Position numbers and translations under genes: made by a program. The notes beneath the pieces were generated by a model. The model ran no database searches, was not told the DNA's origin, and saw only the letters and a program-made list of their open reading frames with translations. DNA of 64,000 nt from Tubulanus polymorphus (taxonomy: Eukaryota; Animalia; Nemertea): contig NC_134029.1 of NCBI RefSeq assembly GCF_964204645.1, forward strand, positions 2,108,001 to 2,172,000. Direction: 5' to 3'. Positions 1 through 23,233 of this stretch are shown here, in pieces; position 1 is the first letter of the stretch, and each line of letters starts with the position of its first letter.

Positions 1-3000
1 AGTTGCAGATGTAAACGTAAGATAAGATATTACAATTAGACAAACATCGCCCAATGTCATGCAATCAAATGTGTAATTTATGACAATAAAATGATGTGTT
101 ATTTTGTGTGTGTAGCTTGTAGACCCGCTCGATGCCCACGAAGATGTAGACACGGTCGTGTTACTAAGCGAAGATATGGATGTCGAGTTAGTTGCCACTG
201 CAAAGGCAAGTTAAATATACAATTCAGATAACTTAAAGTCGTATTGATAATGAAAGTAACCCTTAGATCTAAGATTTAATGCATTTTCATTACAGTTCCA
301 CCTTGTAAGCAACCTAGAAAGGTTGGACCTTGTAGAGCCGCTATTCCCCGTTGGTATTATGATAGTACAGCCAAGAGATGCAGAAAAATGTCCTGGGGAG
401 GATGCAAACCAAATGGAAACAATTTCAAGACTCGCTCTGCTTGTCGCAAGAAGTGTGTCCGTAAGTAAAGTATTTTGTTTCACGTGAACTTTAATATGGT
501 ATTGAATCTATAGCAGTTTAAAGATATCATTATCTACGCCCATTTAGGTTGTAGACGTGTGCGTTGTCCTAAGCATTGCCGTCGCGGTGTTATACGTAAA
601 TTTGGCAGAAACGGATGTCTCATTTCATGTAGATGCAAACGTAAGTAATCTGATTTCGATCTTAGTTTATCTTATTTTTTTCATATAACTGTATGCGATT
701 CAAATTCGATTATTGTGAATATAGCATGCAGACCAGCACGCTGCCCAAAACATTGTCCATTTGGCCGTATCAAGAAACACAAACGTGGATGTCTGGTCAA
801 ATGCATATGCAGACGTAAGTAGATGTTTCGGGTGTTATCAATTTGACTTTCATCATGGTCAACCTTGTCCGGAAATTGTTATGGATTTATAATTATTCAC
901 ATTTCAAAGCGTGTAGACCGGCCCGTTGTCCAGGAAGCTGGTGCCACCCAGCAAGGTTAAAGAAGAGATACAGACATAAATGTCTAGTTAGTTGTCGCTG
1001 TCGTGAATGCAAGCCAGCTCGATGTCCAAGGCATTGCCACTGGGGCAAGATCATGAAACGCAGACATGGCTGCCGGGTTCTCTGCAAATGCAAACGTAAA
1101 TGGCAAATTTACATCCTTAGATTTTCTCTGATGATTACTTTTCTTGTTAATAATATTTGGAAAAAATATTTTCCTTTGCTTAACAGCATGTAAACGTGCT
1201 AGATGCCCACGGTTCTGTGCTCATGGTTATATCAAAAAGAAGAAACACGGTTGCCGTATATCATGTCGATGCAAACGTAAGTGCTTTTAGGTTAATATAA
1301 TTATAATGAAGACGTGGTCTTTTGAAGTTTGAGTATAAAAATACAATTGGTTATTCTAGCATGTAAACCAGCTCCATGTCCACGCCGCTGCTACTGGGGA
1401 CGTATCAAGAAGTTTAAACGTAAATGCCGCATAAGCTGTAAATGTAGACCGTGTAGACCAGCCAAATGTCCAAGCCGCTGCCACTGGGGTAAAGAGAGGA
1501 AATATAGACATGGATGTCTGAGAAGATGTACATGTAAACGTAAGCATGCACCGCTATTAGGCCACAGTTGCCCAACCGTTGTATTGTTGTTTCAAACCTT
1601 TCTCTTAATTTGCAGCATGCAGACCTCGTAAATGTCCAAGAAAGACCAACTGTCATCTCAAAATAAAGAGAAAACATGGCTGTATTGTGGGATGCTACTG
1701 TAGAGGTAATTTTGCTTGTTTACAATGCAATTTTCATTTTAGATAAATTATATTCTTGAATGCAGTTCGATTCATGTATTTGCCGTTTTTTAGAATGCCG
1801 ACCTGCACGCTGTCCCAAATTCTGTAGATATGGCAAGATCAAGAAATATAACAAGTTCAAGTGCAGAACTCGCTGCAGATGTAGAAGTGGGTGTCTGACT
1901 TAACTTTTTTATATGATGAAGCTACCTAATCAAACAAACCAATTTACAAAAATACGTTTTTAACATTGATATAAATCTATTACCCATCTGTTTACAGTTT
2001 GCCGAAAAGCCAGATGTCCTAAATGCAGATTTGGGCATCTTAAGAAGTTCATCAGAGGATGTCGTGTTGGATGCAGATGTAGATGTAAGTGTTACTTGGT
2101 TGAATCTTCACAATCTAGGCATTTCGGCTCTTAATAGTGAGTGACAACATAAGTCCTGCTTGAATGATTGCTATGTCAAACATTTTAACTACAGCATGTA
2201 GACCAGCCCGATGTCCTGGACGTTGTAAATATGGCCGCGTGAAGCGATTCAAATACAAATGCCGCTACAGTTGCAGATGCAGAGGTGAATGAAAGAAACT
2301 ATTATAGACCTGTCAGAAGATAAAATTTACCATCTTGTTCAACATTTCAATCTGTTTTCTTTACTAGTATGCAAACCAGTACGATGTAAACATTTCTGCC
2401 CACTTGGATACATGTACAGACGACGACATGGATGTAAACTCTCATGCAAATGCAAGAGTAAGCGATTAACTTCAACGAAATGATTAAAGAATATTATACG
2501 ATTAATATCAAACTTATGAGACGTATTTCCCCAACTTTGGATGGCATGAGTATTGATGTTTTTTTATTTAGAATGCAAACATGTTCGGGCTCGATGTCCA
2601 TCTCACTGTCCACATGGATATAAAAAGAGAAGGAAGAACAAGTGTGTCACGAAGTGTGCCTGTAGACGTAAGTTGCACTATTGTTCAATATAGATCTTGG
2701 CCGAAATATCACACGATACTGCTATGTTATCTCTATACCTTTTTTCTAAGATATCTAAGTTGACAGGTATCATAATTATTACTTCAGAATGCCGACCAGC
2801 TAAATGCCCAAGAAAATGTAATTTCGGAAGAATTAAGAAATTCCGACGTAGATGCCGCATAAGCTGCAGATGTCGACGTATGTTTTCCACATCATTTGTA
2901 TCATCACATGTTATCAAACTGGATATGATGAAAACTGGGTTCTATTATGTATCATGTATATCTATTGGACTTTTCAGCATGTTCTCATATACGGAAGTCA

Positions 3001-23233: not shown

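Follow-up and report, generated by a model that had tools for sequence, protein, structure and literature searches.

The first 23,233 nucleotides of the window (the whole 64,000-nucleotide stretch analyzed here, OZ123230.1:2,108,001-2,172,000, from a chromosome of the palaeonemertean ribbon worm Tubulanus polymorphus) contain the 3′ portion of a giant gene that encodes a tandem array of small, extremely cationic six-cysteine modules, for which sequence comparison supports a derivation from the antistasin family of protease inhibitors. On balance, we favor the reading that the product is a secreted, noninhibitory and disulfide-stiffened polycation that would bind polyanions and so give cohesion to a tube, a mucus or a glue. 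Positions 17,377-64,000 of the window are identical, with 0 mismatches, to OZ123230.1 in assembly GCA_964204645.2, and the features discussed below are collected in table 1.

The original prediction, made from the letters of the window, had read a frame of 100 exons without stops or frameshifts and about 4,200 residues, and had proposed that the spliced coding sequence be assembled and compared with the Antistasin and Kunitz_BPTI families of Pfam. Our independent gene model, for which splice-aware dynamic programming drew on splice sites and composition and three corrections were made by hand, recovers the same open frame: 100 exons, from 1-16 through 23094-23233, with a single stop (TAA, ending at 23233), which splice to 4,198 aa with a mass of about 500 kDa. 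Because the window opens inside an exon, the gene extends 5′ of the window and these 4,198 aa are the C-terminal part of its product only. All 99 introns are phase 1 and short (75-513 bp, median 90 bp), the donors carry a G at position +5 in 93 of 99 cases, and the splice sites are GT-AG in 98 introns and GC-AG in one (206-295, the only non-GT donor). Across the 23 kb that precede the final stop, the window holds no stop, start or signal exon. A putative 3′ UTR intron (23236-23323) begins two bases past the stop, with a GT donor and a pyrimidine-rich AG acceptor. The protein collection that we searched, in which the receptor gene and the 186-aa gene of table 1 are called, has no called gene over 17,377-23,233; NCBI may lack a model there, or a very long product may have been omitted from the collection.

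Table 1. Coordinates of the giant gene, its parts and its neighbors in the window
Feature	Position	Strand	Basis or remark
Giant gene, 3′ portion	1..23233	+	100 exons, 4,198 aa in window, open at 5′ edge, stop 23231-23233
Last part of exon begun upstream (last two Cys of one module)	1..16	+	Exon-wise Cys count
126 cationic six-Cys antistasin-derived modules	116..22560	+	1-5 modules per exon, most with Pro at P1
Kunitz domain 1, six Cys, Arg at P1	296..460	+	PF00014 72.5 bits
Kunitz domain 2, without Cys14-Cys38 (Gly/Ala), Arg at P1	3547..3711	+	Pfam, alignment
Kunitz domain 3, without Cys14-Cys38 (Gly/Ile), Lys at P1	7194..7358	+	Pfam, alignment
Kunitz domain 4, without Cys14-Cys38 (Gly/Leu), Arg at P1	13649..13813	+	Pfam, alignment
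Aberrant module, six Cys at shifted spacing	21887..21979	+	Gene model
Last module, canonical antistasin C-terminal subdomain, Met at P1	22743..22826	+	PF02822 41.4 bits; 1SKZ E 3.7e-7; guamerin E 0.002
Tail exon 1, bears sole unpaired Cys of in-window protein	22915..23004	+	No Pfam match
Tail exon 2, Lys/Arg/Trp/Tyr-rich, without Cys, ends at stop	23094..23233	+	No known family
Candidate polyadenylation signal, only AATAAA in 700 bp after stop	23703..23708	+	Sequence scan
Called gene, 186 aa, tail to tail with giant gene	25044-23963	-	No Pfam family on record
RDL-type GABA-gated chloride channel subunit	63705-27377	-	Matches XP_074650248.1 exon by exon

Exon-wise counting of cysteines gives exactly 127 six-Cys modules in the window, the number at which the original prediction had arrived by approximation. 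A regular pattern fits 126 of them, with the spacing C-x4-C-x3-C-x11-C-x3-C-x-C in 82 and 4-3-10-2-1 in the last module; this pattern matches 126 times on the forward strand of 1-23233, while the reverse strand, the remaining window sequence and 20 shuffles give no match at all. Four Kunitz domains interrupt the array and split it into runs of 1, 18, 22, 42 and 43 modules (the canonical module is counted in the last run, the aberrant one is not). The cysteines can be accounted for completely: beside the 127 six-Cys modules there are 6, 4, 4 and 4 in the Kunitz domains, 2 from the module begun upstream and 1 spare in the 77-aa C-terminal tail. This even parity points to internal disulfides and leaves one tail cysteine for possible chain linking. 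A metallothionein-like or protamine-like intracellular protein is rejected on account of the Kunitz domains, the antistasin match and the exact six-Cys parity.

The module cores account for 3,610 of the 4,198 aa, and the composition of the whole is correspondingly extreme (Arg 18.9%, Cys 18.7%, Lys 16.5%, Pro 7.9%, His 4.6% and Tyr 3.8%), with Lys and Arg together at 35.4% and a mere 22 Asp and Glu residues in total, much as had been estimated by eye (about one residue in five Cys, one in three Lys or Arg, few acidic). The charge had been underestimated: the in-window protein carries +1,465, and not about +1,000, and each module with its linker about +10.9 (SD 1.4). The two-residue linkers hold at the 116 module junctions that have them, but the CKPC/CRPC form, thought usual, is found at about half (KP/RP at 56, X-Pro at 57, KR/RR at 22). 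There is no transmembrane or hydrophobic stretch in the in-window protein (maximum 19-residue hydropathy 0.37), and it contains three N-glycosylation sequons.

Members of the antistasin family (PF02822; leech antistasin, hirustasin, guamerin and bdellastasin) share with the modules the six-Cys pattern of the C-terminal subdomain and the Gly after the third Cys, and the modules align Cys for Cys with antistasin, hirustasin and bdellastasin. The terminal module matches leech antistasin (1SKZ, E 4e-7), carries Met at P1 as guamerin does and is the only module tested that passes the Pfam gathering score of 21.2 bits; a five-module exon reaches 15.1 bits. Among 34 single modules compared with PF02822, 27 match weakly at E<=1 (best 2e-5), a profile of the main modules recovers the last module at E 2e-5, and a single-module profile retrieves bdellastasin and hirustasin only from the PDB (E 0.07-0.3). 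Together, these relationships support the antistasin identity that had been proposed for the array. AlphaFold gives a confident hairpin for each module modeled (pLDDT 87.5 and 91.3), and we regard a beta-hairpin module as the predicted fold; Foldseek with these models ranks hirustasin first without significance (E 3.7, TM 0.43), and fold searches with them, including VIA-align, returned no significant match.

The inhibitory P1 position (after the second Cys), at which the inhibitors have a substrate-like Arg, Lys, Met or Leu, is Pro in 117 of the 126 modules and Lys, Arg or Met in only five; the array is therefore antistasin-derived yet lacks the defining feature of the inhibitors, which supports a noninhibitory role for it. 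The Kunitz domains all have Lys or Arg at P1, and all four score above the PF00014 threshold (66-72 bits against 21). Only domain 1 has the three-disulfide set that includes Cys14-Cys38, domains 2-4 having four cysteines each.

Allelic variation was taken from four DNA runs over 17,410-23,400, in which the best 40 of 75 SNP rows were examined. Introns hold 32 of these 40; among the others, 7 are synonymous and 1 replaces His with Arg, and the replacement share among the exonic SNPs of the same rows lies far below the share of replacement sites (p 9e-5). Between paralogous modules, which are 53% identical on average, synonymous difference is saturated (mean 0.76) at a replacement difference of 0.33, against 0.54 and 0.06 in the closest pairs, and one pair of identical modules differs at 46% of synonymous sites. 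Allelic SNPs and the saturated synonymous divergence between modules both show that the gene is under purifying selection, a point on which the original prediction is borne out. A pseudogene is rejected because of the lack of any stop in 100 exons and because of the indels listed in the DNA runs (four of four intronic), and an assembly artifact because of the divergence of the modules together with an independent contig that covers 17,410-23,400 without a break. In the 5′ part of the array, duplicated blocks of three to six modules can still be traced, the 3′ third being the most diverged. The introns, described before as unalignable, are so overall (best scores within the shuffle range), except for one pair that shares about 65 bp. 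This pair, 18069-18434 and 20866-21378, comprises two of the three longest introns, the first holding two copies of the ~65 bp element, which is perhaps a small mobile-element remnant.

Relatives were sought exon by exon, the joined translation serving for composition and as a control target. A two-module profile found no relative among 1.84 billion representative proteins, a library size at which a held-out 100-aa piece scores E 3e-21. No match was returned by a five-module exon among 5.8 billion proteins (targets 0.55-1.75 times its length), by searches of the ESM Atlas by features and by shape, or by searches of the PDB with the two-module profile and by folds. This blank covers annotated and called proteins, among which the giant gene is itself absent, so other nemerteans may have unannotated orthologs. 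We also found no description of a protein with the same architecture in the open-access literature, in keeping with the original prediction, whose author knew of no described protein of this size and build. The search for RNA runs that contain the gene returned none, and words of the stretch were absent from five further runs that bear the same species label, whose type and true species are uncertain.

Tubulanus secretes a tube, and we propose that the giant protein may contribute to this or a similar secretion (we found no paper on the composition of the tube in the open-access literature). In this account, Pro at P1 would have abolished the inhibitory action of an antistasin-type six-Cys module, which was then repeated as a folded unit that bears about +11 charges. 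Three disulfides inside each 30-aa bead are predicted to hold a beta-hairpin in place, and the two-residue linkers, half of them with Pro, would keep the string of beads extended, giving a semi-stiff polycation. Released from gland cells, this chain could bind polyanions such as mucins and glycans that carry sulfate or sialic acid, proteins that are acidic or phosphorylated, and surfaces, and thereby lend cohesion to a secreted material, be it the tube, a glue or a sticky mucus. Protection of the Lys/Arg-rich chain from trypsin- and elastase-type proteases is a plausible task for the Kunitz domains and the single Met-P1 module, and the one free cysteine of the tail could join chains end to end. 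While the module sequences vary, the Cys frame and the charge are fixed, so bulk properties appear to be conserved and not a binding site, and a conserved frame with about +11 charges per bead fits a polyelectrolyte material. Cross-linking through DOPA or His, also raised at the outset, is weakly supported by the Tyr and His contents. One counterpoint to this account is the lack of a called gene over the 3′ part of the locus in the collection searched, a surprising gap if the product is abundant in the body wall.

The same charge could instead serve defense, in a cationic mucus polymer stabilized by its disulfides that would repel predators or kill or clump microbes, either whole or cut into defensin-like modules. 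Some +11 charges per 30 aa with three disulfides do resemble cationic antimicrobial peptides, the modules are diverse, and antistasin-like proteins occur in the defensive mucus and proboscis of nemerteans (PMC12846013; PMC10674772); however, the nemertean antistasins described are of small size, that of C. cf. simula having 132 aa (PMC12846013), the hydrophobic content of the chain is low and allelic selection is purifying, not diversifying. The reservoir of released antimicrobial modules that the original prediction entertained is disfavored because the linkers carry no conserved processing site, and we consider a defense polymer in general unlikely. It is slightly harder still to credit that the protein belongs, as a structural or adhesive constituent, to an egg envelope or to the pseudocnidae of the proboscis and not to the body tube or mucus. 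Tubulanid pseudocnidae are thought to be adhesive and their structural compounds are uncharacterized (PMC7897414), the leech protein Tcp belongs to a cocoon, and narrow or seasonal expression would explain both the missing called gene and the lack of a run with the gene's RNA; the mechanism, however, would be that of the polycation favored here, with only the site differing.

We find it improbable that the locus yields not one chain but several tandem genes or, through heavy exon skipping, shorter proteins only. The symmetric phase-1 exons could indeed each be skipped in frame, but nothing inside the window marks an internal start or end of a gene, no intron exceeds 513 bp over 23 kb and there is one unique tail, so that, short of extensive skipping, the product would have 4,198 aa or more. 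Least credible, and in our judgment highly improbable, is that the protein acts mainly as a multivalent protease inhibitor or ion-channel toxin that combines antistasin and Kunitz parts. Four Kunitz domains with basic P1 residues, of which those with two disulfides recall conkunitzins, and one canonical antistasin module would suit such a role; against it, 93% of the modules have Pro at P1 and the Kunitz domains, which amount to only about 5% of the chain, are not flanked by release sites.

If the polycation favored here is a material protein, its modules have precedents in secreted extracorporeal materials: the leech Theromyzon cocoon protein Tcp has six antistasin/EGF repeats (PMC12838937), the byssal antistasin-like protein ALP of Perna viridis has 236 aa (PMC6508894) and the sea-star footprint protein Sfp8 has several antistasin-type repeats (PMC9382459). 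Unlike the giant protein, Tcp and ALP are not described as giant polycations in those reports (PMC12838937; PMC6508894). Tandem repeats without an N-terminal subdomain are likewise known from a six-repeat inhibitor of Hydra, and oligochaetes and Hydra have between two and six antistasin-type repeats (PMC7851590). Against the antistasin family as a whole (1-6 repeats), the giant protein differs in its 127 or more repeats, its Pro at P1, a hairpin longer by one residue, the near absence of acidic residues and the fact that most modules lie below the Pfam cut-off.

In size and charge, the giant protein resembles two flatworm proteins, namely the cohesive Mlig-ap1, which has 5,407 aa, more than 3,600 aa of Lys/Arg-rich regions, a vWD-C8-TIL core and a function that heparin blocks (PMC6410801), and the cohesive Tmed-ap3 of 3,700 aa (PMC9229212). 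All three are giant, extremely Lys/Arg-rich spiralian proteins, secreted in the flatworms and, as we propose, here, a likeness that we do not take for homology. The flatworm proteins hold their charge in low-complexity Gly/Arg/Lys regions, whereas that of the giant protein would lie on folded, disulfide-locked modules with interspersed Kunitz domains; GRKHS-type low-complexity regions were not found in it, the charge falling within the Cys-rich modules. At 35% Lys/Arg, such a chain would be hard to detect by trypsin proteomics, as reported for Mlig-ap1 (PMC6410801). By our comparison, Mlig-ap1, which the original prediction did not cite, appears to be the closest functional precedent, and the giant protein probably works like it while being built of antistasin-family modules. 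It belongs neither to the antistasin inhibitors nor to the ap1/ap3 group.

Extracellular chains of small disulfide-rich modules are also known with other folds. Drosophila Dumpy is an extracellular chain of ~2.5 MDa in which hundreds of such modules serve a mechanical role, and it differs from the giant protein in its EGF/DPY modules, calcium binding, ZP domain and membrane anchor, and in not being polycationic. Mussel foot proteins with EGF modules have two to about a dozen of them and a much higher Tyr/DOPA share. The folded cationic EGF modules of the mussel protein Pvfp-5beta coacervate (PMC9314366), and Pvfp-5beta and mfp-2 likewise present tandem small disulfide-rich modules that expose Lys and Tyr, with an EGF fold in place of the antistasin-derived modules seen here.

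In the large cationic glue proteins that we found described, the charge sits on low-complexity chains, and antistasin-repeat material proteins have a handful of repeats; the giant gene unites both traits and, if its upstream part is contiguous, would encode one of the largest secreted proteins known. More tentatively, the whole gene (~105 kb) may encode a single secreted chain of 19,000-20,000 aa, its net charge running to several thousand, in which ~600 folded cationic beads and ~22 Kunitz domains follow a mucin/VWF-type head and which acts as a load-bearing partner in the nemertean tube, a proposal that we hold to be possible and rather doubtful. The array offers what looks like a clear example of an inhibitor fold that lost its inhibitory site and was multiplied through symmetric-exon duplication, as well as a candidate for the chemistry of nemertean tubes, mucus or pseudocnidae and a natural 30-aa building block for stiff polycations. 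A structured, disulfide-locked polycation with built-in protease guards would, if true, be a biomaterial design new to description, and such proteins can escape annotation-based collections.

The rest of the window is largely occupied by the RDL gene, whose first coding exon (63705-63490) encodes the receptor N-terminus and whose first intron spans 30 kb (about 63472-33319). Pieces of open reading frame inside this intron (47274-47970, forward strand) look by eye like a rhodopsin-type GPCR and gave no Pfam match at E 0.1, and scanned pieces of the 186-aa gene gave no Pfam match either. A (TA)66 microsatellite lies at 57508-57639, and past the 3′ end of the window (locus record 1-7345) the genes for PDE8 and a pyroglutamyl-peptidase (C15) lie upstream of the RDL gene.
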